A stretch of DNA of 64,000 nucleotides from Paramoeba atlantica (Eukaryota > Protista > Discosea), in NCBI GenBank assembly GCA_977017575.1, contig CDRNVI010000105.1, forward strand, positions 36,946 to 100,945, in the 5' to 3' direction. Positions 3,457-27,606 of the stretch are shown one piece after another. Below the pieces are notes generated by a model. It saw only the letters and a program-made list of their open reading frames with translations. It was not told where the DNA came from and did not search any database. The position numbers and the translations under genes were made by a program. Positions within the stretch are counted from its first letter, which is position 1. Each line of letters begins with the position of its first letter.

Positions 3457-3663
3457 GGAGAGAATTGATGGAATTATTTCTTTGCCAACTTAGAATGCCT
3501 TGAGGATTATTCATAGGTTATCGGAAAAATATTGTTTGTTTGTACCGTATCAGACACATATAAACTCTGAACGTGGAAGCGATAGATGAAAGCTTTCAAG
3601 GTGTAAACATTAAGTTTTTCAACCGACTTTACGTCGGTCTTTTGGATTGGATATTGGATTGGA
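2962..3663 (+). mobile_element. Probable 3' end of a 5'-truncated RNase H-bearing non-LTR retrotransposon (representative; present in all 15 full units; 5' boundary approximate)
   Basis: RNase H fragment, stop at 3456, ~170-nt 3' UTR, hairpin ACCGAC-tttac-GTCGGT (3622-3638), then TTGGA TTGGA TA TTGGA TTGGA (3642-3663). The same end structure terminates the TSD-flanked 401-bp insert. No TSD was found for this copy. Confidence 0.6.
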
Positions 3664-3927
3664 CCCCAACCACACCATTCTTCCGACCCAAAAAGACCCC
3701 TTGAGGTCCGAAAAATACTTTTTCACCTATTTCAGTCGAAAATGGGTCATTTTGAGTGGCGCACCACGGCTCGAAGAAGAGATACCTTGAGAAACCAAAG
3801 GCCGAGAAAGCTAGTATAGGCCCCGAACTATCAAAATACAACAGGGGAAAGAATATTGAAAAAATATTTTCTTTGCCAGTTTTTTCGCCAAGTTGAATTT
3901 TTTTTCAAAAACATCCGAACTTGGCGG

Positions 3928-4017
3928 ACCCGTCCTGCGGATACGAGGGGGGGCCACCCCCGGGTAGGGGGCGGAAAATAAGCGCCAACCCCGGCTACCC
4001 ATTCTGCGGGTTTTTTT
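3928..4017 (+). other. GC-rich multi-hairpin block followed by T7 (possible structured RNA or terminator; representative)
   Basis: Stems ACCCGT/GCGGGT (3928-3933/4006-4011), G5/C5 (3947-3961), GGGTAG/CTACCC (3962-3967/3995-4000) and GGCG/CGCC, embedded between A/T tracts. Confidence 0.3.
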
Positions 4018-4389
4018 CGAAAAAAAAATTTCAAAAAAAAAAATCGTGCGGTATGCCCCCCTGTGTTCCTCTTTATATTTTCACTGTTTTTGTTCACTCT
4101 TTTTTCAATAATCGAGGGTAGAGTGGTAGTTATACAACCACCGCAATATAATAATTAAGATATCGCCCAAAGCCCCACCATGAGCGGACAAAGAACCTGC
4201 CACTCAAATGCTTGAATTAGCGCTACCCGGCTTCACATGCGATAACTGAGTTTCGTTTTGCTCGAGAACTCACGAGATACACCTTGCCAGGGGACCCTCC
4301 AGTGTGAAGTGGGTTTCAAATCTTAAACTCATCTTTTTTGATATTTTCAAAAATATTTACTCAGTCCGCTACTTTTTTAAAATAACAAA

Positions 4390-5151
4390 TTGATGAATTT
4401 CGGGCTTCAAGTTTCCAGCCCTCCCTCATGCAAGGTATTTGTGGATGGGGTGCCAGATGTTGAAATCGAGGAAAGCGATATTTTCAAAAAGAAGTTATGC
4501 GTCACGCCAAAACATCTCCAACGATCCTCCGTAATCCTGTTTTCTTCTCTTTCTCAACCCATAGGAATTTCCACGTCGAGCGGGGACCAATTCGTGTTAG
4601 ACCCGGAGGGTGGAGCCGTTAACTTTACTTGTGCGAGCATGTTGAGCATCACGTTTCACAATCTTTTAAAGAAGGAAGCAGAAAGTGTATGTAGAGATGT
4701 TCTTGGTCTTTTTCAAGACAATTTTGTTAATCCTTCATCTGGGGCCCTTTCATACGACTACGTGAGGAACCAGATTGATCAGAAATACCTTTTTAATGTT
4801 TTGAAGTTTCAGAGAATGGTTAAAAATGCAGGCAACCCATTTTACCAATACCTTGGGAAAGACCTTTGCAGGTGGATAGTTTTGCATTCAAGTTCAAAAA
4901 AGCCCAATTTTGGATTTACACGAGGAAAAGAGTATAGTGATCTCTTAAAATTTTCTGTTAGCCAGATCATGGGGGAAGAAGTTGCGATGAGCGACCTTTA
5001 TCAGCTGGTAAGGGGTGAGAAAACCTTTGATTTGCTCCTTTCTTCAAATTTTACTGTGTTGAAAAAGTTTCTTGTGAAATTTAATGCTGAGTTTCTTTGG
5101 TTTCAAGATGAGGCTTCAAAAAAGACATTAATTTCCACAAATCCCCTTTGA
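4390..5151 (+). CDS. Orphan 253-aa protein, unit 2 (Q34K)
   Basis: Copy of 418..1179. Confidence 0.7.
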   Translation: MMNFGLQVSSPPSCKVFVDGVPDVEIEESDIFKKKLCVTPKHLQRSSVILFSSLSQPIGISTSSGDQFVLDPEGGAVNFTCASMLSITFHNLLKKEAESVCRDVLGLFQDNFVNPSSGALSYDYVRNQIDQKYLFNVLKFQRMVKNAGNPFYQYLGKDLCRWIVLHSSSKKPNFGFTRGKEYSDLLKFSVSQIMGEEVAMSDLYQLVRGEKTFDLLLSSNFTVLKKFLVKFNAEFLWFQDEASKKTLISTNPL

Positions 5152-6737
5152 TTCTTAAAGTTTTCCTACTTTTGTAGACATTTCAAAAAGATGCGAAGGA
5201 CCCTACTAGAGCACTTAATCATAAACAATTTTGTACATAACAAACCCCCAGAGCCACCATCATCAAAAATAATTCTCAAGAATTTCTCCTCATTGATGCA
5301 AAACGTCTCTTTTAACGCCTTTTATTTTTGTTTTCGCATAGCCGCCCCCCTCTACCACCAATAAACGCATAAACATTTATCAGCCCCAATGCTACCAAGA
5401 CCCTTCACAGACAGATTTGGAAGTTCCAAGGCCGACGTCCTCTACCAGTTTTCGCTTTTCCAAGGCGGCACCAACGTTATGTTACCAACACGCTGCTTCG
5501 ACGACTTGTATGACAACGCGGCCCACCCAAGAGGCTTAAACCGGGTAAGGGGGCCGGCTCCCTGATGGGAGGAGGGGAAGAAGAATCCAATCCAAAAAGA
5601 AGAAGAAGAGAAGAGAACCGGTTCCCTGATGGGAGCGCCCCTGGCGGCCGTCAGAGTACTGGGCCTAGTCGATTCTCAGCCCAGCCTCTTAGATCGAGGC
5701 CGCCGGGAATTATGCGATGAGCGGGTTCGAAACTTTGATCCCTGAAGGAAGAAGGAAGAAGGTTGCTCGACTAAATGATGCTTTCCAATGTAGGGAAGTT
5801 ACTTCGACAAGTGCTTGTGTAGGCTCTAGTTGAATCTTTAGTGTCTCAACGAGGTTCTGCCAATCTTAAAGCAGAGATTTAAGCCGGGCCGAGGGGTCTG
5901 GCCTTTATTTGGGTAGCTTCTACAGAGGAAAGCGGTGTAATTGTAGTTGGAGACGGTGGGCCTTACAACCTGCAGGTTGGGGGTTATATCCCCGATATCG
6001 ACAAAACGCGCAACCTGCCGGCCTCACTACAAAGGGATAGCGACCAGGAGTGCCTTCAAGTCCCACACCCAACCCCAAATCAATCATTCCGGATTGCTCC
6101 GGATGGCCACTGGCAAGCCAGACCCTTCACAGAAAGATTTGGAAGTTCCGAGGCCGACGTCCTCTATCAGTTTCCGCTTTTCCAAGGCGGCACCAACGTG
6201 CTGTTACCAACACGCTGCGTCGACGAACTGTACGTCAACACGGCTTACCCAAGAGGTGTAAGCCGGGTAAGGGAGCTCGTTCCCTGAGGGGAGGGTCCGG
6301 GACGGTCCTCCGAGTACTGGGCCTAGTCGGTTATTAGCCCAGCCTCTTAGAGGGAGGCCGCCAGGAATATTTCGATGAGCGGGTTTGAACTCGCCGTCTG
6401 AGCACCATGTGCTTGAAACTTTGAATTCTTGCTGCTACGCAACCGCTCGGAAAAAGTCCGCTAGGAAGAAGGCCTCCCTCTGGAGGAACGACCCGGAACC
6501 GCAGAGCCGAACCAGGCTCCAGCGCAGCCGCCGAAAATTCATGCTGCTTACGCAAACGAGGCATGAGACACAGCCTACACGATGCAACGGGGTTGGACGC
6601 CCGTCCTGGTAGCTACGGTTGGGTACCCGTGCTCGGGCCGCAAGGCTTCGAGTGCCGTCTTGGAAGGGGGCAGCAAGACAATGAAGGTCGGTGGCTTGAG
6701 ACTCTACCCTAACGGTGCAGAGCCCTCGGTGTCTTTT

Positions 6738-6785
6738 CTTCTTCTTCTTCTTCTTCTTCTTCTTCTTCTTCTTCTTCTTCTTCTT

Positions 6786-6815
<30 letters not shown>
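6738..6815. repeat. (CTT)26, unit 2
   Basis: Directly visible. Confidence 0.99.
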
Positions 6816-6816
<1 letters not shown>

Positions 6817-6918
6817 TTCCCCAGAGTCCTGAAAGCTGGTTTGCAACTCTACTACCGCGTTTAACGAAAAGCCTAAATTGAAATATTATAGCCAAAAATA
6901 GCCGATTTTCGGGTAAAA

Positions 6919-7413
6919 ATGGGGTCATTTTTGTGTATTTGTTTTCATTCACGAAATCCGATATTTGCTCGTGGGAAATCACTCGTAGGCATGAATGAAA
7001 GCCTGCCGAACGTATTGGGTAAAGAATGCGACCCCAACCCCAAGAATGGCGACCTAATGTATGATGTGGACGCAAAGCTCAGGTTACTAAAATTCCATTC
7101 GTATAATATATATTTGTGCAAGGTAAAGGCGCACATTGGAAACAAATGGAATGAGGAGGCAGATGGTCTAGCACTTTTGGCATCACGAAAAGTGGCACGG
7201 GCTCCGACCCAAAAAAGGAGAAAAACAACTGCTAACTCGGAGGATAGTGAGAATTCACAACCGTCATGGTCTTTGAAAGCCTTACTCAAAAGGAAGTCCC
7301 TTGGAAATAAGCAAGCACGAGACATTCCATCATCGAAGCGCGAAGCTGAGGCGGAAGGGGTATTTCGAGGGAAGGTTGCGAGAGCTGGAGGTAATAGGAA
7401 ACCGTCTAAGTAG
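6919..7413 (+). pseudogene. RNase H C-terminal fragment, unit 2
   Basis: Copy of 2962..3456. Confidence 0.8.
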
Positions 7414-8346
7414 GGAGAGAATTGATGGAATTATTTCTTTGCCAACTTAGAATGCCTTGAGGATTATTCATAGGTTATCGGAAAAATATTGTTTGTTTGT
7501 ACCGTATCAGACACATATAAACTCTGAACGTGGAAGCGATAGATGAAAGCTTTCAAGGTGTAAACATTAAGTTTTTCAACCGACTTTACGTCGGTCTTTT
7601 GGATTGGATATTGGATTGGACCCCAACCACACCATTCTTCCGACCCAAAAAGACCCCTTGAGGTCCGAAAAATACTTTTTCACCTATTTCAGTCGAAAAT
7701 GGGTCATTTTGAGTGGCGCACCACGGCTCGAAGAAGAGATACCTTGAGAAACCAAAGGCCGAGAAAGCTAGTATAGGCCCCGAACTATCAAAATACAACA
7801 GGGGAAAGAATATTGAAAAAATATTTTCTTTGCCAGTTTTTTCGCCAAGTTGAATTTTTTTTCAAAAACATCCGAACTTGGCGGACCCTTCCTGCGGATA
7901 CGAGGGGGGGCCACCCCCGGGTAGGGGGCGGAAAATAAGCGCCAACCCCGGCTACCCATTCTGCGGGTTTTTTTCGAAAAAAAAATTTCAAAAAAAAAAA
8001 TCGTGCGGTATGCCCCCCTGTGTTCCTCTTTATATTTTCACTGTTTTTGTTCACTCTTTTTTCAATAATCGAGGGTAGAGTGGTAGTTATACAACCACCG
8101 CAATATAATAATTAAGATATCGCCCAAAGCCCCACCATGAGCGGACAAAGAACCTGCCACTCAAATGCTTGAATTAGCGCTACCCGGCTTCACATGCGAT
8201 AACTGAGTTTCGTTTTGCTCGAGAACTCACGAGATACACCTTGCCAGGGGACCCTCCAGTGTGAAGTGGGTTTCAAATCTTGAACTCATCTTTTTTGATA
8301 TTTTCAAAAATATTTACTCAGTCCGCTACTTTTTTAAAATAACAAA

Positions 8347-9108
8347 TTGATGAATTTCGGGCTTCAAGTTTCCAGCCCTCCCTCATGCAAGGTATTTGTG
8401 GATGGGGTGCCAGATGTTGAAATCGAGGAAAGCGATATTTTCAAACAGAAGTTATGCGTCACGCCAAAACATCTCCAACGATCCTCCGTAATCCTGTTTT
8501 CTTCTCTTTCTCAAACCATAGGAATTTCCACGTCGAGCGGGGACCAATTCGTGTTAGACCCGGAGGGTGGAGCCGTTAACTTTACTTGTGCGAGCATGTT
8601 GAGCATCACGTTTCACAATCTTTTAAAGAAGGAAGCAGAAAGTGTATGTAGAGATGTTCTTGGTCTTTTTCAAGACAATTTTGTTAATCCTTCATCTGGG
8701 GCCCTTTCATACGACTACGTGAGGAACCAGATTGATCAGAAATACCTTTTTAATGTTTTGAAGTTTCAGAGAATGGTTAAAAATGCAGGCAACCCATTTT
8801 ACCAATACCTTGGGAAAGACCTTTGCAGGTGGATAGTTTTGCATTCAAGTTCAAAAAAGCCCAATTTTGGATTTACACGAGGAAAAGAGTATAGTGATCT
8901 CTTAAAATTTTCTGTTAGCCAGATCATGGGGGAAGAAGTTGCGATGAGCGACCTTTATCAGCTGGTAAGGGGTGAGAAAACCTTTGATTTGCTCCTTTCT
9001 TCAAATTTTACTGTGTTGAAAAAGTTTCTTGTGAAATTTAATGCTGAGTTTCTTTGGTTTCAAGATGAGGCTTCAAAAAAGACATTAATTTCCACAAATC
9101 CCCTTTGA
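8347..9108 (+). CDS. Orphan 253-aa protein, unit 3 (P57T)
   Basis: Copy of 418..1179. Confidence 0.7.
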   Translation: MMNFGLQVSSPPSCKVFVDGVPDVEIEESDIFKQKLCVTPKHLQRSSVILFSSLSQTIGISTSSGDQFVLDPEGGAVNFTCASMLSITFHNLLKKEAESVCRDVLGLFQDNFVNPSSGALSYDYVRNQIDQKYLFNVLKFQRMVKNAGNPFYQYLGKDLCRWIVLHSSSKKPNFGFTRGKEYSDLLKFSVSQIMGEEVAMSDLYQLVRGEKTFDLLLSSNFTVLKKFLVKFNAEFLWFQDEASKKTLISTNPL

Positions 9109-10694
9109 TTCTTAAAGTTTCCCTACTTTTGTAGACATTTCAAAAAGATGCGAAGGACCCTACTAGAGCACTTAATCATAAACAATTTTGTACATAACAA
9201 ACCCCCAGAGCCACCATCATCAAAAATAATTCTCAAGAATTTCTCCTCATTGATGCAAAACGTCTCTTTTAACGCCTTTTATTTTTGTTTTCGCATAGCC
9301 GCCCCCCTCTACCACCAATAAACGCATAAACATTTATCAGCCCCAATGCTACCAAGACCCTTCACAGACAGATTTGGAAGTTCCAAGGCCGACGTCCTCT
9401 ACCAGTTTTCGCTTTTCCAAGGCGGCACCAACGTTATGTTACCAACACGCTGCTTCGACGACTTGTATGACAACGCGGCCCACCCAAGAGGCTTAAACCG
9501 GGTAAGGGGGCCGGCTCCCTGATGGGAGGAGGGGAAGAAGAATCCAATCCAAAAAGAAGAAGAAGAGAAGAGAACCGGTTCCCTGATGGGAGCGCCCCTG
9601 GCGGCCGTCAGAGTACTGGGCCTAGTCGATTCTCAGCCCAGCCTCTTAGATCGAGGCCGCCGGGAATTATGCGATGAGCGGGTTCGAAACTTTGATCCCT
9701 GAAGGAAGAAGGAAGAAGGTTGCTCGACTAAATGATGCTTTCCAATGTAGGGAAGTTACTTCGACAAGTGCTTGTGTAGGCTCTAGTTGAATCTTTAGTG
9801 TCTCAACGAGGTTCTGCCAATCTTAAAGCAGAGATTTAAGCCGGGCCGAGGGGTCTGGCCTTTATTTGGGTAGCTTCTACAGAGGAAAGCGGTGTAATTG
9901 TAGTTGGAGACGGTGGGCCTTACAACCTGCAGGTTGGGGGTTATATCCCCGATATCGACAAAACGCGCAACCTGCCGGCCTCACTACAAAGGGATAGCGA
10001 CCAGGAGTGCCTTCAAGTCCCACACCCAACCCCAAATCAATCATTCCGGATTGCTCCGGATGGCCACTGGCAAGCCAGACCCTTCACAGAAAGATTTGGA
10101 AGTTCCGAGGCCGACGTCCTCTATCAGTTTCCGCTTTTCCAAGGCGGCACCAACGTGCTGTTACCAACACGCTGCGTCGACGAACTGTACGTCAACACGG
10201 CTTACCCAAGAGGTGTAAGCCGGGTAAGGGAGCTCGTTCCCTGAGGGGAGGGTCCGGGACGGTCCTCCGAGTACTGGGCCTAGTCGGTTATTAGCCCAGC
10301 CTCTTAGAGGGAGGCCGCCAGGAATATTTCGATGAGCGGGTTTGAACTCGCCGTCTGAGCACCATGTGCTTGAAACTTTGAATTCTTGCTGCTACGCCAC
10401 CGCTCGGAAAAAGTCCGCTAGGAAGAAGGCCTCCCTCTGGAGGAACGACCCGGAACCGCAGAGCCGAACCAGGCTCCAGCGCAGCCGCCGAAAATTCATG
10501 CTGCTTACGCAAACGAGGCATGAGACACAGCCTACACGATGCAACGGGGTTGGACGCCCGTCCTGGTAGCTACGGTTGGGTACCCGTGCTCGGGCCGCAA
10601 GGCTTCGAGTGCCGTCTTGGAAGGGGGCAGCAAGACAATGAAGGTCGGTGGCTTGAGACTCTACCCTAACGGTGCAGAGCCCTCGGTGTCTTTT

Positions 10695-10730
10695 CTTCTT
10701 CTTCTTCTTCTTCTTCTTCTTCTTCTTCTT

Positions 10731-10760
<30 letters not shown>
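10695..10760. repeat. (CTT)22, unit 3
   Basis: Directly visible. Confidence 0.99.
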
Positions 10761-10761
<1 letters not shown>

Positions 10762-10863
10762 TTCCCCAGAGTCCTGAAAGCTGGTTTGCAACTCTACTAC
10801 CGCGTTTAACGAAAAGCCTAAATTGAAATATTATAGCCAAAAATAGCCGATTTTCGGGTAAAA

Positions 10864-11358
10864 ATGGGGTCATTTTTGTGTATTTGTTTTCATTCACGAA
10901 ATCCGATATTTGCTCGTGGGAAATCACTCGTAGGCATGAATGAAAGCCTGCCGAACGTATTGGGTAAAGAATGCGACCCCAACCCCAAGAATGGCGACCT
11001 AATGTATGATGTGGACGCAAAGCTCAGGTTACTAAAATTCCATTCGTATAATATATATTTGTGCAAGGTAAAGGCGCACATTGGAAACAAATGGAATGAG
11101 GAGGCAGATGGTCTAGCACTTTTGGCATCACGAAAAGTGGCACGGGCTCCGACCCAAAAAAGGAGAAAAACAACTGCTAACTCGGAGGATAGTGAGAATT
11201 CACAACCGTCATGGTCTTTGAAAGCCTTACTCAAAAGGAAGTCCCTTGGAAATAAGCAAGCACGAGACATTCCATCATCGAAGCGCGAAGCTGAGGCGGA
11301 AGGGGTATTTCGAGGGAAGGTTGCGAGAGCTGGAGGTAATAGGAAACCGTCTAAGTAG
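10864..11358 (+). pseudogene. RNase H C-terminal fragment, unit 3
   Basis: Copy of 2962..3456. Confidence 0.8.
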
Positions 11359-12291
11359 GGAGAGAATTGATGGAATTATTTCTTTGCCAACTTAGAATGC
11401 CTTGAGGATTATTCATAGGTTATCGGAAAAATATTGTTTGTTTGTACCGTATCAGACACATATAAACTCTGAACGTGGAAGCGATAGATGAAAGCTTTCA
11501 AGGTGTAAACATTAAGTTTTTCAACCGACTTTACGTCGGTCTTTTGGATTGGATATTGGATTGGACCCCAACCACACCATTCTTCCGACCCAAAAAGACC
11601 CCTTGAGGTCCGAAAAATACTTTTTCACCTATTTCAGTCGAAAATGGGTCATTTTGAGTGGCGCACCACGGCTCGAAGAAGAGATACCTTGAGAAACCAA
11701 AGGCCGAGAAAGCTAGTATAGGCCCCGAACTATCAAAATACAACAGGGGAAAGAATATTGAAAAAATATTTTCTTTGCCAGTTTTTTCGCCAAGTTGAAT
11801 TTTTTTTCAAAAACATCCGAACTTGGCGGACCCGTCCTGCGGATACGAGGGGGGGCCACCCCCGGGTAGGGGGCGGAAAATAAGCGCCAACCCCGGCTAC
11901 CCATTCTGCGGGTTTTTTTCGAAAAAAAAATTTCAAAAAAAAAAATCGTGCGGTATGCCCCCCTGTGTTCCTCTTTATATTTTCACTGTTTTTGTTCACT
12001 CTTTTTTCAATAATCGAGGGTAGAGTGGTAGTTATACAACCACCGCAATATAATAATTAAGATATCGCCCAAAGCCCCACCATGAGCGGACAAAGAACCT
12101 GCCACTCAAATGCTTGAATTAGCGCTACCCGGCTTCACATGCGATAACTGAGTTTCGTTTTGCTCGAGAACTCACGAGATACACCTTGCCAGGGGACCCT
12201 CCAGTGTGAAGTGGGTTTCAAATCTTGAACTCATCTTTTTTGATATTTTCAAAAATATTTACTCAGTCCGCTACTTTTTTAAAATAACAAA

Positions 12292-13053
12292 TTGATGAAT
12301 TTCGGGCTTCAAGTTTCCAGCCCTCCCTCATGCAAGGTATTTGTGGATGGGGTGCCAGATGTTGAAATCGAGGAAAGCGATATTTTCAAACAGAAGTTAT
12401 GCGTCACGCCAAAACATCTCCAACGATCCTCCGTAATCCTGTTTTCTTCTCTTTCTCAACCCATAGGAATTTCCACGTCGAGCGGGGACCAATTCGTGTT
12501 AGACCCGGAGGGTGGAGCCGTTAACTTTACTTGTGCGAGCATGTTGAGCATCACGTTTCACAATCTTTTAAAGAAGGAAGCAGAAAGTGTATGTAGAGAT
12601 GTTCTTGGTCTTTTTCAAGACAATTTTGTTAATCCTTCATCTGGGGCCCTTTCATACGACTACGTGAGGAACCAGATTGATCAGAAATACCTTTTTAATG
12701 TTTTGAAGTTTCAGAGAATGGTTAAAAATGCAGGCAACCCATTTTACCAATACCTTGGGAAAGACCTTTGCAGGTGGATAGTTTTGCATTCAAGTTCAAA
12801 AAAGCCCAATTTTGGATTTACACGAGGAAAAGAGTATAGTGATCTCTTAAAATTTTCTGTTAGCCAGATCATGGGGGAAGAAGTTGCGATGAGCGACCTT
12901 TATCAGCTGGTAAGGGGTGAGAAAACCTTTGATTTGCTCCTTTCTTCAAATTTTACTGTGTTGAAAAAGTTTCTTGTGAAATTTAATGCTGAGTTTCTTT
13001 GGTTTCAAGATGAGGCTTCAAAAAAGACATTAATTTCCACAAATCCCCTTTGA
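12292..13053 (+). CDS. Orphan 253-aa protein, unit 4
   Basis: Copy of 418..1179. Confidence 0.7.
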   Translation: MMNFGLQVSSPPSCKVFVDGVPDVEIEESDIFKQKLCVTPKHLQRSSVILFSSLSQPIGISTSSGDQFVLDPEGGAVNFTCASMLSITFHNLLKKEAESVCRDVLGLFQDNFVNPSSGALSYDYVRNQIDQKYLFNVLKFQRMVKNAGNPFYQYLGKDLCRWIVLHSSSKKPNFGFTRGKEYSDLLKFSVSQIMGEEVAMSDLYQLVRGEKTFDLLLSSNFTVLKKFLVKFNAEFLWFQDEASKKTLISTNPL

Positions 13054-14639: not shown

Positions 14640-14675
14640 CTTCTTCTTCTTCTTCTTCTTCTTCTTCTTCTTCTT

Positions 14676-14705
<30 letters not shown>
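14640..14705. repeat. (CTT)22, unit 4
   Basis: Directly visible. Confidence 0.99.
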
Positions 14706-14706
<1 letters not shown>

Positions 14707-16236: not shown

Positions 16237-16998
16237 TTGATGAATTTCGGGCTTCAAGTTTCCAGCCCTCCCTCATGCAAGGTATTTGTGGATGGGGTGC
16301 CAGATGTTGAAATCGAGGAAAGCGATATTTTCAAACAGAAGTTATGCGTCACGCCAAAACATCTCCAACGATCCTCCGTAATCCTGTTTTCTTCTCTTTC
16401 TCAAACCATAGGAATTTCCACGTCGAGCGGGGACCAATTCGTGTTAGACCCGGAGGGTGGAGCCGTTAACTTTACTTGTGCGAGCATGTTGAGCATCACG
16501 TTTCACAATCTTTTAAAGAAGGAAGCAGAAAGTGTATGTAGAGATGTTCTTGGTCTTTTTCAAGACAATTTTGTTAATCCTTCATCTGGGGCCCTTTCAT
16601 ACGACGACGTGAGGAACCAGATTGATCAGAAATACCTTTTTAATGTTTTGAAGTTTCAGAGAATGGTTAAAAATGCAGGCAACCCATTTTACCAATACCT
16701 TGGGAAAGACCTTTGCAGGTGGATAGTTTTGCATTCAAGTTCAAAAAAGCCCAATTTTGGATTTACACGAGGAAAAGAGTATAGTGATCTCTTAAAATTT
16801 TCTGTTAGCCAGATCATGGGGGAAGAAGTTGCGATGAGCGACCTTTATCAGCTGGTAAGGGGTGAGAAAACCTTTGATTTGCTCCTTTCTTCAAATTTTA
16901 CTGTGTTGAAAAGGTTTCTTGTGAAATTTAATGCTGAGTTTCTTTGGTTTCAAGATGAGGCTTCAAAAAAGACATTATTTTCCACAAATCCCCTTTGA
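16237..16998 (+). CDS. Orphan 253-aa protein, unit 5 (P57T, Y124D, K226R, I248F)
   Basis: Copy of 418..1179. Confidence 0.7.
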   Translation: MMNFGLQVSSPPSCKVFVDGVPDVEIEESDIFKQKLCVTPKHLQRSSVILFSSLSQTIGISTSSGDQFVLDPEGGAVNFTCASMLSITFHNLLKKEAESVCRDVLGLFQDNFVNPSSGALSYDDVRNQIDQKYLFNVLKFQRMVKNAGNPFYQYLGKDLCRWIVLHSSSKKPNFGFTRGKEYSDLLKFSVSQIMGEEVAMSDLYQLVRGEKTFDLLLSSNFTVLKRFLVKFNAEFLWFQDEASKKTLFSTNPL

Positions 16999-18584
16999 TT
17001 CTTAAAGTTTCCCTACTTTTGTAGACATTTCAAAAAGATGCGAAGGACCCTAATAGAGCACTTAATCATAAACAATTTTGTACATAACAAACCCCCAGAG
17101 CCACCATCATCAAAAATAATTCTCAAGAATTTCTCCTCATTGATGCAAAACGTCTCTTTTAACGCCTTTTATTTTTGTTTTCGCATAGCCGCCCCCCTCT
17201 ACCACCAATAAACGCATAAACATTTATCAGCCCCAATGCTACCAAGACCCTTCACAGACAGATTTGGAAGTTCCAAGGCCGACGTCCTCTACCAGTTTTC
17301 GCTTTTCCAAGGCGGCACCAACGTTATGTTACCAACACGCTGCTTCGACGACTTGTATGACAACGCGGCCCACCCAAGAGGCTTAAACCGGGTAAGGGGG
17401 CCGGCTCCCTGATGGGAGGAGGGGAAGAAGAATCCAATCCAAAAAGAAGAAGAAGAGAAGAGAACCGGTTCCCTGATGGGAGCGCCCCTGGCGGCCGTCA
17501 GAGTACTGGGCCTAGTCGATTCTCAGCCCAGCCTCTTAGATCGAGGCCGCCGGGAATTATGCGATGAGCGGGTTCGAAACTTTGATCCCTGAAGGAAGAA
17601 GGAAGAAGGTTGCTCGACTAAATGATGCTTTCCAATGTAGGGAAGTTACTTCGACAAGTGCTTGTGTAGGCTCTAGTTGAATCTTTAGTGTCTCAACGAG
17701 GTTCTGCCAATCTTAAAGCAGAGATTTAAGCCGGGCCGAGGGGTCTGGCCTTTATTTGGGTAGCTTCTACAGAGGAAAGCGGTGTAATTGTAGTTGGAGA
17801 CGGTGGGCCTTACAACCTGCAGGTTGGGGGTTATATCCCCGATATCGACAAAACGCGCAACCTGCCGGCCTCACTACAAAGGGATAGCGACCAGGAGTGC
17901 CTTCAAGTCCCACACCCAACCCCAAATCAATCATTCCGGATTGCTCCGGATGGCCACTGGCAAGCCAGACCCTTCACAGAAAGATTTGGAAGTTCCGAGG
18001 CCGACGTCCTCTATCAGTTTCCGCTTTTCCAAGGCGGCACCAACGTGCTGTTACCAACACGCTGCGTCGACGAACTGTACGTCAACACGGCTTACCCAAG
18101 AGGTGTAAGCCGGGTAAGGGAGCTCGTTCCCTGAGGGGAGGGTCCGGGACGGTCCTCCGAGTACTGGGCCTAGTCGGTTATTAGCCCAGCCTCTTAGAGG
18201 GAGGCCGCCAGGAATATTTCGATGAGCGGGTTTGAACTCGCCGTCTGAGCACCATGTGCTTGAAACTTTGAATTCTTGCTGCTACGCAACCGCTCGGAAA
18301 AAGTCCGCTAGGAAGAAGGCCTCCCTCTGGAGGAACGACCCGGAACCGCAGAGCCGAACCAGGCTCCAGCGCAGCCGCCGAAAATTCATGCTGCTTACGC
18401 AAACGAGGCATGAGACACAGCCTACACGATGCAACGGGGTTGGACGCCCGTCCTGGTAGCTACGGTTGGGTACCCGTGCTCGGGCCGCAAGGCTTCGAGT
18501 GCCGTCTTGGAAGGGGGCAGCAAGACAATGAAGGTCGGTGGCTTGAGACTCTACCCTAACGGTGCAGAGCCCTCGGTGTCTTTT

Positions 18585-18632
18585 CTTCTTCTTCTTCTTC
18601 TTCTTCTTCTTCTTCTTCTTCTTCTTCTTCTT

Positions 18633-18662
<30 letters not shown>
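18585..18662. repeat. (CTT)26, unit 5
   Basis: Directly visible. Confidence 0.99.
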
Positions 18663-18663
<1 letters not shown>

Positions 18664-18765
18664 TTCCCCAGAGTCCTGAAAGCTGGTTTGCAACTCTACT
18701 ACCGCGTTTAACGAAAAGCCTAAATTGAAATATTATAGCCAAAAATAGCCGATTTTCGGGTAAAA

Positions 18766-19260
18766 ATGGGGTCATTTTTGTGTATTTGTTTTCATTCACG
18801 AAATCCGATATTTGCTCGTGGGAAATCACTCGTAGGCATGAATGAAAGCCTGCCGAACGTATTGGGTAAAGAATGCGACCCCAACCCCAAGAATGGCGAC
18901 CTAATGTATGATGTGGACGCAAAGCTCAGGTTACTAAAATTCCATTCGTATAATATATATTTGTGCAAGGTAAAGGCGCACATTGGAAACAAATGGAATG
19001 AGGAGGCAGATGGTCTAGCACTTTTGGCATCACGAAAAGTGGCACGGGCTCCGACCCAAAAAAGGAGAAAAACAACTGCTAACTCGGAGGATAGTGAGAA
19101 TTCACAACCGTCATGGTCTTTGAAAGCCTTACTCAAAAGGAAGTCCCTTGGAAATAAGCAAGCACGAGACATTCCATCATCGAAGCGCGAAGCTGAGGCG
19201 GAAGGGGTATTTCGAGGGAAGGTTGCGAGAGCTGGAGGTAATAGGAAACCGTCTAAGTAG
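18766..19260 (+). pseudogene. RNase H C-terminal fragment, unit 5
   Basis: Copy of 2962..3456. Confidence 0.8.
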
Positions 19261-20193
19261 GGAGAGAATTGATGGAATTATTTCTTTGCCAACTTAGAAT
19301 GCCTTGAGGATTATTCATAGGTTATCGGAAAAATATTGTTTGTTTGTACCGTATCAGACACATATAAACTCTGAACGTGGAAGCGATAGATGAAAGCTTT
19401 CAAGGTGTAAACATTAAGTTTTTCAACCGACTTTACGTCGGTCTTTTGGATTGGATATTGGATTGGACCCCAACCACACCATTCTTCCGACCCAAAAAGA
19501 CCCCTTGAGGTCCGAAAAATACTTTTTCACCTATTTCAGTCGAAAATGGGTCATTTTGAGTGGCGCACCACGGCTCGAAGAAGAGATACCTTGAGAAACC
19601 AAAGGCCGAGAAAGCTAGTATAGGCCCCGAACTATCAAAATACAACAGGGGAAAGAATATTGAAAAAATATTTTCTTTGCCAGTTTTTTCGCCAAGTTGA
19701 ATTTTTTTTCAAAAACATCCGAACTTGGCGGACCCGTCCTGCGGATACGAGGGGGGGCCACCCCCGGGTAGGGGGCGGAAAATAAGCGCCAACCCCGGCT
19801 ACCCATTCTGCGGGTTTTTTTCGAAAAAAAAATTTCAAAAAAAAAAATCGTGCGGTATGCCCCCCTGTGTTCCTCTTTATATTTTCACTGTTTTTGTTCA
19901 CTCTTTTTTCAATAATCGAGGGTAGAGTGGTAGTTATACAACCACCGCAATATAATAATTAAGATATCGCCCAAAGCCCCACCATGAGCGGACAAAGAAC
20001 CTGCCACTCAAATGCTTGAATTAGCGCTACCCGGCTTCACATGCGATAACTGAGTTTCGTTTTGCTCGAGAACTCACGAGATACACCTTGCCAGGGGACC
20101 CTCCAGTGTGAAGTGGGTTTCAAATCTTGAACTCATCTTTTTTGATATTTTCAAAAATATTTACTCAGTCCGCTACTTTTTTAAAATAACAAA

Positions 20194-20955
20194 TTGATGA
20201 ATTTCGGGCTTCAAGTTTCCAGCCCTCCCTCATGCAAGGTATTTGTGGATGGGGTGCCAGATGTTGAAATCGAGGAAAGCGATATTTTCAAACAGAAGTT
20301 ATGCGTCACGCCAAAACATCTCCAACGATCCTCCGTAATCCTGTTTTCTTCTCTTTCTCAAACCATAGGAATTTCCACGTCGAGCGGGGACCAATTCGTG
20401 TTAGACCCGGAGGGTGGAGCCGTTAACTTTACTTGTGCGAGCATGTTGAGCATCACGTTTCACAATCTTTTAAAGAAGGAAGCAGAAAGTGTATGTAGAG
20501 ATGTTCTTGGTCTTTTTCAAGACAATTTTGTTAATCCTTCATCTGGGGCCCTTTCATACGACTACGTGAGGAACCAGATTGATCAGAAATACCTTTTTAA
20601 TGTTTTGAAGTTTCAGAGAATGGTTAAAAATGCAGGCAACCCATTTTACCAATACCTTGGGAAAGACCTTTGCAGGTGGATAGTTTTGCATTCAAGTTCA
20701 AAAAAGCCCAATTTTGGATTTACACGAGGAAAAGAGTATAGTGATCTCTTAAAATTTTCTGTTAGCCAGATCATGGGGGAAGAAGTTGCGATGAGCGACC
20801 TTTATCAGCTGGTAAGGGGTGAGAAAACCTTTGATTTGCTCCTTTCTTCAAATTTTACTGTGTTGAAAAAGTTTCTTGTGAAATTTAATGCTGAGTTTCT
20901 TTGGTTTCAAGATGAGGCTTCAAAAAAGACATTAATTTCCACAAATCCCCTTTGA
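20194..20955 (+). CDS. Orphan 253-aa protein, unit 6 (P57T)
   Basis: Copy of 418..1179. Confidence 0.7.
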   Translation: MMNFGLQVSSPPSCKVFVDGVPDVEIEESDIFKQKLCVTPKHLQRSSVILFSSLSQTIGISTSSGDQFVLDPEGGAVNFTCASMLSITFHNLLKKEAESVCRDVLGLFQDNFVNPSSGALSYDYVRNQIDQKYLFNVLKFQRMVKNAGNPFYQYLGKDLCRWIVLHSSSKKPNFGFTRGKEYSDLLKFSVSQIMGEEVAMSDLYQLVRGEKTFDLLLSSNFTVLKKFLVKFNAEFLWFQDEASKKTLISTNPL

Positions 20956-22541
20956 TTCTTAAAGTTTCCCTACTTTTGTAGACATTTCAAAAAGATGCGA
21001 AGGACCCTACTAGAGAACTTAATCATAAACAATTTTGTACATAACAAACCCCCAGAGCCACCATCATCAAAAATAATTCTCAAGAATTTCTCCTCATTGA
21101 TGCAAAACGTCTCTTTTAACGCCTTTTATTTTTGTTTTCGCATAGCCGCCCCCCTCTACCACCAATAAACGCATAAACATTTATCAGCCCCAATGCTACC
21201 AAGACCCTTCACAGACAGATTTGGAAGTTCCAAGGCCGACGTCCTCTACCAGTTTTCGCTTTTCCAAGGCGGCACCAACGTTATGTTACCAACACGCTGC
21301 TTCGACGACTTGTATGACAACGCGGCCCACCCAAGAGGCTTAAACCGGGTAAGGGGGCCGGCTCCCTGATGGGAGGAGGGGAAGAAGAATCCAATCCAAA
21401 AAGAAGAAGAAGAGAAGAGAACCGGTTCCCTGATGGGAGCGCCCCTGGCGGCCGTCAGAGTACTGGGCCTAGTCGATTCTCAGCCCAGCCTCTTAGATCG
21501 AGGCCGCCGGGAATTATGCGATGAGCGGGTTCGAAACTTTGATCCCTGAAGGAAGAAGGAAGAAGGTTGCTCGACTAAATGATGCTTTCCAATGTAGGGA
21601 AGTTACTTCGACAAGTGCTTGTGTAGGCTCTAGTTGAATCTTTAGTGTCTCAACGAGGTTCTGCCAATCTTAAAGCAGAGATTTAAGCCGGGCCGAGGGG
21701 TCTGGCCTTTATTTGGGTAGCTTCTACAGAGGAAAGCGGTGTAATTGTAGTTGGAGACGGTGGGCCTTACAACCTGCAGGTTGGGGGTTATATTCCCGAT
21801 ATCGACAAAACTCGCAACCTGCCGGCCTCACTACAAAGGGAAAGCGACCAGGAGTGCCTTCAAGTCCCACACCCAACCCCAAATCAATCATTCCGGATTG
21901 CTCCGGATGGCCACTGGCAAGCCAGACCCTTCACAGAAAGATTTGGAAGTTCCGAGGCCGACGTCCTCTATCAGTTTCCGCTTTTCCAAGGCGGCACCAA
22001 CGTGCTGTTACCAACACGCTGCGTCGACGAACTGTACGTCAACACGGCTTACCCAAGAGGTGTAAGCCGGGTAAGGGAGCTCGTTCCCTGAGGGGAGGGT
22101 CCGGGACGGTCCTCCGAGTACTGGGCCTAGTCGGTTATTAGCCCAGCCTCTTAGAGGGAGGCCGCCAGGAATATTTCGATGAGCGGGTTTGAACTCGCCG
22201 TCTGAGCACCATGTGCTTGAAACTTTGAATTCTTGCTGCTACGCAACCGCTCGGAAAAAGTCCGCTAGGAAGAAGGCCTCCCTCTGGAGGAACGACCCGG
22301 AACCGCAGAGCCGAACCAGGCTCCAGCGCAGCCGCCGAAAATTCATGCTGCTTACGCAAACGAGGCATGAGACACAGCCTACACGATGCAACGGGGTTGG
22401 ACGCCCGTCCTGGTAGCTACGGTTGGGTACCCGTGCTCGGGCCGCAAGGCTTCGAGTGCCGTCTTGGAAGGGGGCAGCAAGACAATGAAGGTCGGTGGCT
22501 TGAGACTCTACCCTAACGGTGCAGAGCCCTCGGTGTCTTTT

Positions 22542-22592
22542 CTTCTTCTTCTTCTTCTTCTTCTTCTTCTTCTTCTTCTTCTTCTTCTTCTT

Positions 22593-22622
<30 letters not shown>
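22542..22622. repeat. (CTT)27, unit 6
   Basis: Directly visible. Confidence 0.99.
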
Positions 22623-22623
<1 letters not shown>

Positions 22624-22725
22624 TTCCCCAGAGTCCTGAAAGCTGGTTTGCAACTCTACTACCGCGTTTAACGAAAAGCCTAAATTGAAATATTATAGCC
22701 AAAAATAGCCGATTTTCGGGTAAAA

Positions 22726-23220
22726 ATGGGGTCATTTTTGTGTATTTGTTTTCATTCACGAAATCCGATATTTGCTCGTGGGAAATCACTCGTAGGCATG
22801 AATGAAAGCCTGCCGAACGTATTGGGTAAAGAATGCGACCCCAACCCCAAGAATGGCGACCTAATGTATGATGTGGACGCAAAGCTCAGGTTACTAAAAT
22901 TCCATTCGTATAATATATATTTGTGCAAGGTAAAGGCGCACATTGGAAACAAATGGAATGAGGAGGCAGATGGTCTAGCACTTTTGGCATCACGAAAAGT
23001 GGCACGGGCTCCGACCCAAAAAAGGAGAAAAACAACTGCTAACTCGGAGGATAGTGAGAATTCACAACCGTCATGGTCTTTGAAAGCCTTACTCAAAAGG
23101 AAGTCCCTTGGAAATAAGCAAGCACGAGACATTCCATCATCGAAGCGCGAAGCTGAGGCGGAAGGGGTATTTCGAGGGAAGGTTGCGAGAGCTGGAGGTA
23201 ATAGGAAACCGTCTAAGTAG
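22726..23220 (+). pseudogene. RNase H C-terminal fragment, unit 6
   Basis: Copy of 2962..3456. Confidence 0.8.
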
Positions 23221-24153
23221 GGAGAGAATTGATGGAATTATTTCTTTGCCAACTTAGAATGCCTTGAGGATTATTCATAGGTTATCGGAAAAATATTGTT
23301 TGTTTGTACCGTATCAGACACATATAAACTCTGAACGTGGAAGCGATAGATGAAAGCTTTCAAGGTGTAAACATTAAGTTTTTCAACCGACTTTACGTCG
23401 GTCTTTTGGATTGGATATTGGATTGGACCCCAACCACACCATTCTTCCGACCCAAAAAGACCCCTTGAGGTCCGAAAAATACTTTTTCACCTATTTCAGT
23501 CGAAAATGGGTCATTTTGAGTGGCGCACCACGGCTCGAAGAAGAGATACCTTGAGAAACCAAAGGCCGAGAAAGCTAGTATAGGCCCCGAACTATCAAAA
23601 TACAACAGGGGAAAGAATATTGAAAAAATATTTTCTTTGCCAGTTTTTTCGCCAAGTTGAATTTTTTTTCAAAAACATCCGAACTTGGCGGACCCGTCCT
23701 GCGGATACGAGGGGGGGCCACCCCCGGGTAGGGGGCGGAAAATAAGCGCCAACCCCGGCTACCCATTCTGCGGGTTTTTTTCGAAAAAAAAATTTCAAAA
23801 AAAAAAATCGTGCGGTATGCCCCCCTGTGTTCCTCTTTATATTTTCACTGTTTTTGTTCACTCTTTTTTCAATAATCGAGGGTAGAGTGGTAGTTATACA
23901 ACCACCGCAATATAATAATTAAGATATCGCCCAAAGCCCCACCATGAGCGGACAAAGAACCTGCCACTCAAATGCTTGAATTAGCGCTACCCGGCTTCAC
24001 ATGCGATAACTGAGTTTCGTTTTGCTCGAGAACTCACGAGATACACCTTGCCAGGGGACCCTCCAGTGTGAAGTGGGTTTCAAATCTTGAACTCATCTTT
24101 TTTGATATTTTCAAAAATATTTACTCAGTCCGCTACTTTTTTAAAATAACAAA

Positions 24154-24915
24154 TTGATGAATTTCGGGCTTCAAGTTTCCAGCCCTCCCTCATGCAAGGT
24201 ATTTGTGGATGGGGTGCCAGATGTTGAAATCGAGGAAAGCGATATTTTCAAACAGAAGTTATGCGTCACGCCAAAACATCTCCAACGATCCTCCGTAATC
24301 CTGTTTTCTTCTCTTTCTCAAACCATAGGAATTTCCACGTCGAGCGGGGACCAATTCGTGTTAGACCCGGAGGGTGGAGCCGTTAACTTTACTTGTGCGA
24401 GCATGTTGAGCATCACGTTTCACAATCTTTTAAAGAAGGAAGCAGAAAGTGTATGTAGAGATGTTCTTGGTCTTTTTCAAGACAATTTTGTTAATCCTTC
24501 ATCTGGGGCCCTTTCATACGACTACGTGAGGAACCAGATTGATCAGAAATACCTTTTTAATGTTTTGAAGTTTCAGAGAATGGTTAAAAATGCAGGCAAC
24601 CCATTTTACCAATACCTTGGGAAAGACCTTTGCAGGTGGATAGTTTTGCATTCAAGTTCAAAAAAGCCCAATTTTGGATTTACACGAGGAAAAGAGTATA
24701 GTGATCTCTTAAAATTTTCTGTTAGCCAGATCATGGGGGAAGAAGTTGCGATGAGCGACCTTTATCAGCTGGTAAGGGGTGAGAAAACCTTTGATTTGCT
24801 CCTTTCTTCAAATTTTACTGTGTTGAAAAAGTTTCTTGTGAAATTTAATGCTGAGTTTCTTTGGTTTCAAGATGAGGCTTCAAAAAAGACATTAATTTCC
24901 ACAAATCCCCTTTGA
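24154..24915 (+). CDS. Orphan 253-aa protein, unit 7 (P57T)
   Basis: Copy of 418..1179. Confidence 0.7.
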   Translation: MMNFGLQVSSPPSCKVFVDGVPDVEIEESDIFKQKLCVTPKHLQRSSVILFSSLSQTIGISTSSGDQFVLDPEGGAVNFTCASMLSITFHNLLKKEAESVCRDVLGLFQDNFVNPSSGALSYDYVRNQIDQKYLFNVLKFQRMVKNAGNPFYQYLGKDLCRWIVLHSSSKKPNFGFTRGKEYSDLLKFSVSQIMGEEVAMSDLYQLVRGEKTFDLLLSSNFTVLKKFLVKFNAEFLWFQDEASKKTLISTNPL

Positions 24916-26501
24916 TTCTTAAAGTTTCCCTACTTTTGTAGACATTTCAAAAAGATGCGAAGGACCCTACTAGAGAACTTAATCATAAACAATTTTGTAC
25001 ATAACAAACCCCCAGAGCCACCATCATCAAAAATAATTCTCAAGAATTTCTCCTCATTGATGCAAAACGTCTCTTTTAACGCCTTTTATTTTTGTTTTCG
25101 CATAGCCGCCCCCCTCTACCACCAATAAACGCATAAACATTTATCAGCCCCAATGCTACCAAGACCCTTCACAGACAGATTTGGAAGTTCCAAGGCCGAC
25201 GTCCTCTACCAGTTTTCGCTTTTCCAAGGCGGCACCAACGTTATGTTACCAACACGCTGCTTCGACGACTTGTATGACAACGCGGCCCACCCAAGAGGCT
25301 TAAACCGGGTAAGGGGGCCGGCTCCCTGATGGGAGGAGGGGAAGAAGAATCCAATCCAAAAAGAAGAAGAAGAGAAGAGAACCGGTTCCCTGATGGGAGC
25401 GCCCCTGGCGGCCGTCAGAGTACTGGGCCTAGTCGATTCTCAGCCCAGCCTCTTAGATCGAGGCCGCCGGGAATTATGCGATGAGCGGGTTCGAAACTTT
25501 GATCCCTGAAGGAAGAAGGAAGAAGGTTGCTCGACTAAATGATGCTTTCCAATGTAGGGAAGTTACTTCGACAAGTGCTTGTGTAGGCTCTAGTTGAATC
25601 TTTAGTGTCTCAACGAGGTTCTGCCAATCTTAAAGCAGAGATTTAAGCCGGGCCGAGGGGTCTGGCCTTTATTTGGGTAGCTTCTACAGAGGAAAGCGGT
25701 GTAATTGTAGTTGGAGACGGTGGGCCTTACAACCTGCAGGTTGGGGGTTATATTCCCGATATCGACAAAACTCGCAACCTGCCGGCCTCACTACAAAGGG
25801 AAAGCGACCAGGAGTGCCTTCAAGTCCCACACCCAACCCCAAATCAATCATTCCGGATTGCTCCGGATGGCCACTGGCAAGCCAGACCCTTCACAGAAAG
25901 ATTTGGAAGTTCCGAGGCCGACGTCCTCTATCAGTTTCCGCTTTTCCAAGGCGGCACCAACGTGCTGTTACCAACACGCTGCGTCGACGAACTGTACGTC
26001 AACACGGCTTACCCAAGAGGTGTAAGCCGGGTAAGGGAGCTCGTTCCCTGAGGGGAGGGTCTGGGACGGTCCTCCGAGTACTGGGCCTAGTCGGTTATTA
26101 GCCCAGCCTCTTAGAGGGAGGCCGCCAGGAATATTTCGATGAGCGGGTTTGAACTCGCCGTCTGAGCACCACGTGCTTGAAACTTTGAATTCTTGCTGCT
26201 ACTCCACCGCTCGGAAAAAGTCCGCTAGGAAGAAGGCCTCCCTCTGGAGGAACGACCCGGAACCGCAGAGCCGAACCAGGCTCCAGCGCAGCCGCCGAAA
26301 ATTCATGCTGCTTACGCAAACGAGGCATGAGACACAGCCTACACGATGCAACGGGGTTGGGCGCCCGTCCTGGTAGCTACGGTTGGGTACCCGTGCTCGG
26401 GCCGCAAGGCTTCGAGTGCCGTCTTGGAAGGGGGCAGCAAGACAATGAAGGTCGGTGGCTTGAGACTCTACCCTAACGGTGCAGAGCCCTCGGTGTCTTT
26501 T

Positions 26502-26531
26502 CTTCTTCTTCTTCTTCTTCTTCTTCTTCTT

Positions 26532-26561
<30 letters not shown>
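26502..26561. repeat. (CTT)20, unit 7
   Basis: Directly visible. Confidence 0.99.
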
Positions 26562-26562
<1 letters not shown>

Positions 26563-26664
26563 TTCCCCAGAGTCCTGAAAGCTGGTTTGCAACTCTACTA
26601 CCGCGTTTAACGAAAAGCCTAAATTGAAATATTATAGCCAAAAATAGCCGATTTTCGGGTAAAA

Positions 26665-27159
26665 ATGGGGTCATTTTTGTGTATTTGTTTTCATTCACGA
26701 AATCCGATATTTGCTCGTGGGAAATCACTCGTAGGCATGAATGAAAGCCTGCCGAACGTATTGGGTAAAGAATGCGACCCCAACCCCAAGAATGGCGACC
26801 TAATGTATGATGTGGACGCAAAGCTCAGGTTACTAAAATTCCATTCGTATAATATATATTTGTGCAAGGTAAAGGCGCACATTGGAAACAAATGGAATGA
26901 GGAGGCAGATGGTCTAGCACTTTTGGCATCACGAAAAGTGGCACGGGCTCCGACCCAAAAAAGGAGAAAAACAACTGCTAACTCGGAGGATAGTGAGAAT
27001 TCACAACCGTCATGGTCTTTGAAAGCCTTACTCAAAAGGAAGTCCCTTGGAAATAAGCAAGCACGAGACATTCCATCATCGAAGCGCGAAGCTGAGGCGG
27101 AAGGGGTATTTCGAGGGAAGGTTGCGAGAGCTGGAGGTAATAGGAAACCGTCTAAGTAG
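26665..27159 (+). pseudogene. RNase H C-terminal fragment, unit 7
   Basis: Copy of 2962..3456. Confidence 0.8.
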
Positions 27160-27205
27160 GGAGAGAATTGATGGAATTATTTCTTTGCCAACTTAGAATG
27201 CCTTG

Positions 27206-27606
27206 GTTCTGAGCCTTGCTCAGGCTCAGAAAGGGGAGAGTGGGGGGAGGGTTAGTTCAAAAACTATTCAGACTATGAATCGTCCTCGAAAAAATTGTAG
27301 CCAAATTCCTAAGCCATTAGGTAAGAGACGAGATTACTTCAAGACTGTGGTAGGTGATCCCCTCCCCAAAAAGGGTACCTCGCCTCCTGTAGATGCCGGA
27401 ATGAATTCTACCGGGGAGAATGAATGCTTGCCTGAAGAACCTGACTCCGAAAATAAAAACTCGCAGGAAGGACGTTCCACGCCCGGTTCAAAGGCCAAGG
27501 AGCATAAAAGTGCAGGTTCACCGGATAGTAAGACGTTGAAACGCAAAAATGACAGATGTACTCTTAACCGATGAAAATCGGTATTATTGGATTGGATTGG
27601 ATTGGA
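27206..27606 (+). mobile_element. 401-bp 5'-truncated retroelement insertion with 13-bp TSD and (TTGGA)4 tail, unit 7
   Basis: The empty site ttagaatgccttg occurs once in 12 units and is duplicated here (27193-27205 and 27607-27619). The body has an open frame to TGA 27574, hairpin ACCGAT-gaaa-ATCGGT (27567-27582) and tail 27587-27606. Confidence 0.9.

Follow-up and report, generated by a model that had tools for sequence, protein, structure and literature searches.

How do two insertions that share no sequence over their bodies come to end in the same hairpin and the same tail? The question is raised by a stretch of 64,000 nucleotides (nt) of the Paramoeba atlantica assembly GCA_977017575.1 (contig CDRNVI010000105.1, positions 36,946 to 100,945), in the following called the window, in which 16 units of approximately 3.95 kb are arranged in tandem. 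In 15 of the units there is one copy of what we call the resident element, and at three places a resident copy is interrupted by an insert of 401 bp. On the forward strand, the resident ends at 3622-3663 with ACCGAC-TTTAC-GTCGGT-CTT-(TTGGA)2TA(TTGGA)2 and the insert at 27567-27606 with ACCGAT-GAAA-ATCGGT-ATTA-(TTGGA)4, as was correctly read in a first-pass annotation of the window. That annotation took the two for unrelated inserts, either long interspersed nuclear elements (LINEs) or passengers, mobilised through a shared cis-signal. The analysis presented here indicates that hairpin and pentamer tail are probably the conserved 3′ module of one LINE family with a single open reading frame (ORF), that both window elements are 5′-truncated copies, and that the mechanism is most likely of the stringent type. 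The idea of a common signal thus survives as a 3′ module found at nine ends of a LINE family; its other part, passenger status for the insert, was not borne out.

One LINE family behind two insertions

Direct comparison of resident and insert revealed no similarity outside hairpin and tail, either at the nucleotide or at the protein level, in agreement with the first-pass annotation. The connection is provided by other loci of the same organism. Four of these (L001-L004) are contigs of an ENA assembly, and further loci were obtained as the contigs of proteins matched by HMMER; L019 is a JGI metagenome contig. The HMMER search, with the 125 residues of the resident as query against 1.84 billion representative sequences, gave 7 proteins only, and a search with the translated insert frame gave two relatives, both in the ENA assembly of the same organism (L003 and L004). 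Judged from the HMMER search, public protein sets contain hardly any members of the family, with the exception of two ENA assemblies and one JGI sample.

The relative of the insert in L003 is the end of a LINE ORF (...CYVCKVKSHNGNIYNEKADTLALAGSRK...KRRKTATSASEAQRVSSETVQTMNRPRK...), of which residues 35-106 align with the RNase H end of the resident (BLASTP, E 3e-17) and residues 107-170 with the insert frame (BLASTP, 73% identity, E 3e-33). Since the L003 matches are contiguous, resident and insert are non-overlapping parts of one kind of protein, and the claim that they are unrelated had to be abandoned. The alignments indicate that the two are 5′-truncated copies of two sub-lineages of one LINE family that encodes an apurinic/apyrimidinic (AP) endonuclease, a reverse transcriptase (RT) and RNase H, and that their shared hairpin and tail reflect common descent within this family. 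A near-full-length element is present in L015 (717-6558). It contains the Pfam domains Exo_endo_phos, RVT_1 and RNase_H in this order, has an 18-bp tandem repeat before the ATG, and terminates in a hairpin identical to that of the resident followed by (TTGGA)3. Frameshifts interrupt this copy, as does an insertion that resembles a short interspersed nuclear element (SINE).

The insert itself (27206-27606, forward strand) can, by homology to L003 and L004, be described as a severely 5′-truncated LINE copy of a second sub-lineage of the resident's family. Its reading frame (27206-27574) corresponds to the tail of the LINE ORF on the C-terminal side of RNase H. This frame is already open at 27203, within the left target-site duplication (TSD), and closes at 27574 with a TGA stop in the hairpin loop. 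The DNA is approximately 80% identical to the ORF tail of the LINE copies in L003 and L004. The hairpin (27567-27582, arms ACCGAT and ATCGGT, loop GAAA) is found in both the minimum free energy (MFE) and the centroid folds, and the (TTGGA)4 tail (27587-27606) follows a spacer ATTA. The insert is flanked by a TSD TTAGAATGCCTTG at 27193-27205, with the right copy at 27607-27619.

One could also imagine that the insert is an unrelated, non-autonomous SINE-like passenger that borrowed the 3′ signal of a LINE. It is short, has perfect TSDs, and lacks direct similarity to the resident beyond hairpin and tail; over its first ~42 nt the alignment with L003 is loose, and a family of short, SIDER-like LINE derivatives can be envisaged as well. 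Nevertheless, the frame is open over all 401 bp, the protein and DNA identities to the ORF tails of L003 and L004 are as high as given above, and the relatives are parts of longer LINEs. The poorly aligning head still reads AQ...RVSS like L003, with an indel. Among the loose ends listed from read contigs, the exact insert sequence occurs solely in the context of the array (three copies at one site, low-depth contigs). We therefore regard a passenger origin of the insert as very unlikely and treat it as a truncated LINE copy.

Some further observations concern the insert and its relatives. The first five letters of its target, TTAGA, differ by one letter from the tail unit TTGGA (27193-27205, with 3490-3506 in the first unit), which may reflect microhomology of target and tail at priming. 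In L004, a relative of the insert is rearranged: its last ~90 nt, with the hairpin and (TAGGA)4, lie inverted (4870-4960, reverse strand) directly upstream of the body (4974-5227, forward strand), either through a genuine inversion or through an error of assembly.

Nine 3′ ends

A search of the window with the pattern ACCGAY-N3-6-RTCGGT-N2-6-TTGGATTGGA gave 18 matches against 0 expected. These represent only two independent sequences, the resident end in 15 identical copies and the insert end in three. The other two inserts (39548-39948 and 43929-44329) are identical to the first and have the same 13-bp duplication, and the site is uninterrupted in the remaining 12 units. Since all insert copies are at one site with one TSD, they stem from a single insertion event, and the independent sample in the window is two.

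Seven more ends from the same organism bring the number of independent 3′ ends to nine. The L015 end has the hairpin and spacer of the resident (ACCGAC-TTTAC-GTCGGT-CTT) and a tail of TTGGA units. Three ends differ from it in the loop: ACCGAC-TTTAA-GTCGGT with tail TAGGA-TA-TAGGA in L016, ACCGAC-TTAC-GTCGGT with (TTGGA)3 in L013, and ACCGAC-ATAT-GTCGGT with (TTGGA)3 in L014. Locus L017 contributes two ends, GCCGAC-TTT-GTCGGT with (TTGGA)4 on the forward strand and ACTGA(T)-TT(TA)-(A)TCGGT with (ATAAG)3 on the reverse strand. Next to the insert end (ACCGAT-GAAA-ATCGGT with (TTGGA)4), there is a reverse-strand end in L004 that reads ACCGAT-GCAA-ATCGGT and has (TAGGA)4 as its tail.

All nine ends terminate in pentamer repeats. 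The stem is kept throughout, with repeat units that are TTGGA, TAGGA or ATAAG and unit numbers that vary (2+2, 3 or 4), and in every lineage the hairpin is positioned 3-4 nt ahead of the terminal repeat. A second block of the 3′ untranslated region (UTR), ATGCCYTGAGGA, is common to four of the five sub-lineages and lies in most of them approximately 127-130 nt upstream of the hairpin.

Searches beyond these loci added little. An Rfam scan of the window gave nothing at gathering score, and a full-text literature search combining TTGGA, non-LTR (long terminal repeat) and tail gave nothing relevant. The three-unit pattern had 0 matches in the collections genome_contigs and viral_contigs, which hardly cover protists, so that such blanks mean little. 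Pattern matches at seven JGI metagenome loci were rejected as chance two-unit matches within unrelated sequence, several of them with a C·A mismatch.

Constraint on the stem

Across the nine ends, all 54 stem pair cells are occupied by standard pairs, and pairing is preserved in every change. At one position C-G (six ends) alternates with U-A (three ends), and at two others a single change affects one side only, from A-U to G-U and from C-G to U-G, respectively; RNAalifold independently predicts the same helix at -8.25 kcal/mol. The first of these changes is the compensatory C-G/T-A swap at the top pair, already pointed out in the first-pass annotation; it is real, and it would be weak evidence with two sequences alone, so that it is the added lineages that make the case. 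Between sub-lineages the arms are 86% identical, as compared to 27% for the loop, 63% for the spacer, 51% for the tail and 33-37% for the upstream UTR. Contexts of 80 nt fold no better than shuffled sequences (z-scores of -0.18 and +0.29), and in a generic scan some 5-bp hairpin was also found ahead of many unrelated microsatellites. Thus, the signal is to be sought in the conserved sequence and position of the stem and not in thermodynamics.

Several points weigh against the module as a recognised 3′ signal. In a shuffle control, 8 of 500 shuffled alignments reached the observed score, and the program cautions that relatedness alone can produce it without structure. There are only about three to four independent stem changes, and the sole compensatory pair possibly represents one event; given the high conservation of the stem, selection on its sequence and on its structure cannot be separated. 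A 45-position covariance model (R1), searched over a sample of 167 kb and not the whole genome, recovered nothing beyond the sequences it was trained on and tandem copies of these. Furthermore, an abundant SINE-like element with a TTGGA/T tail, discussed below, does not have the ACCGAY stem sequence. The case for constraint on the 17-nt element is good, and that for constraint on pairing rather than sequence moderate.

Conservation without any function, with the module shared merely by ancestry or by exchange of 3′ ends through template switching or recombination, deserves consideration here since all carriers belong to one family, with little variation in the stem and thin covariation, and since the rearranged copy in L004 illustrates that 3′ ends get shuffled. 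However, loop and flanking UTR have diverged to 27-37% identity with the arms still at 86%, and three kinds of arm change all preserve pairing. Repeated exchange of the module alone would itself imply that the module is needed. An incidental origin of the conservation is for these reasons very improbable.

A functional module does not need to be an RT recognition signal. The hairpin could be selected for another role in the LINE transcript, for example in its stability, its export from the nucleus, termination of translation or formation of the 3′ end, since conservation alone does not tell which function is under selection. A stop codon lies within the loop in the insert lineage, and a defined 3′ end signal would be useful in an organism with trans-splicing and polycistronic transcription. 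On the other hand, all lineages have the hairpin at a constant position 3-4 nt upstream of the terminal repeat, and it is carried into every truncated copy. Unrelated hairpins likewise precede other tails in L014 and L019, and in UnaL2 and ZfL2 the same arrangement serves RT recognition. We consider another RNA function unlikely, and recognition by the RT of the element the better explanation of the conserved module.

Resident element and its insertion site

The resident is a 5′-truncated LINE fragment of 581 bp (3083-3663, forward strand) which contains the C-terminal motif of RNase H, followed by the ORF tail and by a 3′ UTR with hairpin and repeat tail at its end. The RNase H motif in its reading frame is CKVKAHIGNKWNEEADGLAL, with a Pfam RNase_H score of 16.3 bits that is below the family cut-off. 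The second conserved 3′ UTR block, common to several sub-lineages, reads ATGCCTTGAGGA in this element (3495-3506), and it is within this block that the insert landed. The hairpin (3622-3638, arms ACCGAC and GTCGGT, loop TTTAC) occurs in MFE and centroid folds and is followed by the CTT spacer and the tail (TTGGA)2TA(TTGGA)2 at 3642-3663. The next copy is at 7040-7620, and the copy in unit 7 (26786-27780) is split by the insert into 26786-27205 and 27607-27780.

The boundaries of the resident follow from a paralogous site in L002 that is unoccupied, with flanks that run uninterrupted through ...GAATGCGACTCCAACCATACCATTCC...; this empty site fixes the element at 7040-7620, or 3083-3663 in unit 1. 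The TSD is CCCCAACC, at 3075-3082 on the left and 3664-3671 on the right. It can also be written (GA)CCCCAACC, in which the two extra letters GA might equally well be counted with the tail. The first-pass annotation had proposed inspection of the flanks for TSDs, and these are thus present at resident and insert alike. Since there are TSDs and an empty site, both elements are true insertions.

Public reads were used in the form of Logan contigs of four runs (contigs only, with no RNA runs among them). Many joints in these contigs connect flank to flank and skip the resident, word depth is far higher on the flanks, and loose ends and skip joints coincide with the boundaries of the resident. It follows that insertion of the resident took place in a single copy of a high-copy repeat and preceded amplification of the unit. 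The resident flanks (26700-26785 and 27781-27900) exceed the resident in word depth 20-40-fold in runs X1 and X2 and only about twofold in run X4; L002 has one empty copy of the repeat at 6030-6130. The insert is missing from the main array contig of run X4, and no sequence of it was seen in organism B, for which depth is very low. In three runs of organism A, contigs that span the insert reach approximately 0.6-12% of the resident depth. Units with the insert look like a minority form, possibly polymorphic, with the restriction that contig depth is not copy number. An array unit in L001 (6870-6960, compared with window positions 7340-7400 and 27357-27373) has an 18-nt internal duplication. 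The 16-nt string ATCCCCTCCCCAAAAA is inserted in the resident ORF tail of that unit, and it is also present inside the 401-bp insert.

A SINE-like retroposon as possible passenger

A second kind of element in these loci ends in a related manner. It is a non-coding SINE-like retroposon of approximately 385 bp with TSDs of 10-13 bp, present in about 14 copies in 127 kb of loci, and its 3′ terminus is TCCGGA-GCAA-TCCGGA-ATGA-TTTGGATT(GGA)(T)n. The 5′ end holds GGAGGTGGCGGAGTGGC repeats, and one copy has a poly(A)-like tail; no Rfam match was found, and ARAGORN detected no tRNA head. In the window there is one copy per unit (6082-6444 in unit 2, reverse strand), which has the hairpin TCCGGA-GCAA-TCCGGA at 6088-6103 and a TTGGA/T-rich tail that is decayed in that copy.

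For the first-pass annotation, TTGGA-tailed insertions elsewhere without the hairpin would have refuted its reading. Tails of the TTGGA type are indeed not always preceded by the ACCGAY stem, but a hairpin of the same shape does precede that of the SINE-like element. The SINE-like hairpin has the same 6-bp length as that of the LINEs, a GNRA loop as in the insert lineage, and the same spacing to the tail. MAFFT places the two hairpins in register; in the combined alignment 78 of 78 cells pair, with the C-C-G/C-G-G core the same throughout and both partners exchanged at three pairs, although any two 6-bp hairpins in register will pair fully and the four SINE-like rows represent one family. No SINE with an identical LINE tail region was found in the loci examined. 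It is conceivable, if somewhat doubtful, that the SINE-like retroposon is a true passenger of the LINE family. If it is, the RT would read shape and a core of 3 bp instead of the complete stem sequence, and a LINE-SINE pair of the stringent type would exist in a kinetoplastid-type genome. The known kinetoplastid pairs, ingi/RIME and L1Tc/NARTc, share 5′ ends and poly(A).

Further copies of this retroposon are located in L015 (5147-5527), L017 (3610-3987 and 6578-6951), L018 (4627-5015 and 11455-11840) and L004 (8175-8527), and it interrupts LINE ORFs in L004, L015 and L017. The window also contains a partial second copy at about 5400-5760. Inside this fragment, once per unit, TTGGATTGGA occurs without a hairpin (5587-5596, reverse strand) in a ~45-nt stretch between near-identical copies of TCCCATCAGGGARCCGG, perhaps as a very small insertion or as a scar left by duplication.

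Proposed mechanism

Both window elements would be dead-on-arrival, 5′-truncated products of target-primed reverse transcription. The resident would derive from the lineage of the L015 element and have entered one copy of the high-copy repeat before the 3.95-kb unit was amplified, and the insert, from the L003/L004 lineage, would have entered the 3′ UTR of the resident once and then been duplicated with the unit. The protein of the element may bind the stem-loop of its own RNA, after which reverse transcription would begin on the short tandem repeat and slippage would alter the number of units. The variable unit numbers and the interrupted tails (TTGGA-TTGGA-TA-TTGGA-TTGGA and TAGGA-TA-TAGGA) fit such slippage. 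A constant stem next to changing tail units suggests that recognition is directed at the stem. Since hairpin and repeat have the same placement in other LINE families, we read the module as a handle for the RT followed by a priming site; by analogy, stem-loop binding by the element protein with priming on the repeat is the most likely course of events. The possibility that the tail represents target DNA, with microsatellites as targets, was ruled out, since the 5′ flanks are without TTGGA and the TSDs differ per locus.

Other LINE ends were observed in the same set of loci. In L014, another family ends at 7343-7389 (forward strand) and 8255-8300 (reverse strand) with ACTGAAGG-GTAATG-CCTTCAGT-GT-(TG)n. 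A distant relative in L019, with an RT that is 44% identical, has GACC-GAAA-GGTT followed by (TTGTAA)n at 2530-2600, and an end in L004 (9930-9953) has (AAACAT)4 and no clear hairpin.

Comparison with known systems

The eel and zebrafish elements UnaL2 and ZfL2, stringent-type LINEs of the L2 clade that have partner SINEs, are the obvious systems for comparison. UnaL2 needs both a stem-loop and a (UGUAA)n repeat, usually with n=3; the repeat is where its reverse transcription begins, with slippage of the template (PMC1636434); in LINEs of the UnaL2/ZfL2 type the stem-loop is bound by the cognate ORF2 protein (PMC4176376). The Paramoeba-assembly family has in common with them a conserved 3′ stem-loop directly before a pentamer repeat of about three to four units. 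It differs in clade and domain set, since it has an RNase H, located C-terminal to RVT_1 in L015. The domain set of the L2 type is AP endonuclease and RT without RNase H. The helix of the new family is a simple one of 6 bp with a variable loop, shorter than that of UnaL2 and without its internal loop; its tail units vary among sub-lineages.

With respect to domain order, the nearest systems are ingi and L1Tc. L1Tc/ingi-like LINEs, together with many spliced-leader fragments beside retrotransposons, have been described in the genome of Perkinsela sp., and in the accessible portions of that paper's text and supplements a 3′ hairpin-tail module is not mentioned (PMC5601477). The present family resembles ingi and L1Tc in its long single ORF with AP endonuclease, RT and RNase H in this order and in its TSDs of approximately 10-13 bp. 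The ingi and L1Tc elements end in poly(A) and share the 5′ Pr77 signature with RIME, NARTc and SIDER, and their clade has a C-terminal C2H2 zinc finger after RNase H. In contrast, the family described here ends in a hairpin and a pentamer repeat, with no poly(A) among the nine ends. No Cys/His finger was seen when the 70-120 residues after RNase H were read by eye in the translated tails.

The string AGTTTCTGTACCTTGTTG, found in three loci, matches the conserved end of the kinetoplastid spliced leader, and a host genome of the kinetoplastid type fits this spliced-leader-like motif. The spliced-leader-like sequence ATACAGTTTCTGTACCTTGTTG occurs on the reverse strand in L013 (1518-1535 and 2091-2108) and L018 (5910-5927) and on the forward strand in L017 (7228-7245), and at three of these four places it is followed by GTAC; the sequence resembles the 3′ part of the spliced-leader exon with its splice donor.

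Microsatellite tails and recognition of the 3′ UTR are also known from the I factor, with (TAA)n, from CR1, with octamer tails, and from the Bombyx elements SART1 and TRAS, with a 3′ UTR stem-loop. The likeness consists of a tandem-repeat tail other than poly(A) and a structured 3′ UTR used by the element's own RT; the sequences are unrelated and these are elements of animals. As a kind of system, the module thus belongs to textbook LINE biology, and what is new is a family member in an unusual host, which we consider a modest surprise. In LINEs, an ingi-like domain order is not tied to a poly(A) tail. Captured in the covariance model, the module is a searchable 3′ signature of one LINE family in a protist genome that has been little studied, by which truncated copies without an enzyme domain, such as the 401-bp insert, can be annotated. 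In comparison with the established stringent LINEs, the changing tails on a kept stem, together with the re-paired stem of the SINE-like element, offer a natural set of variants for what a stringent RT reads.

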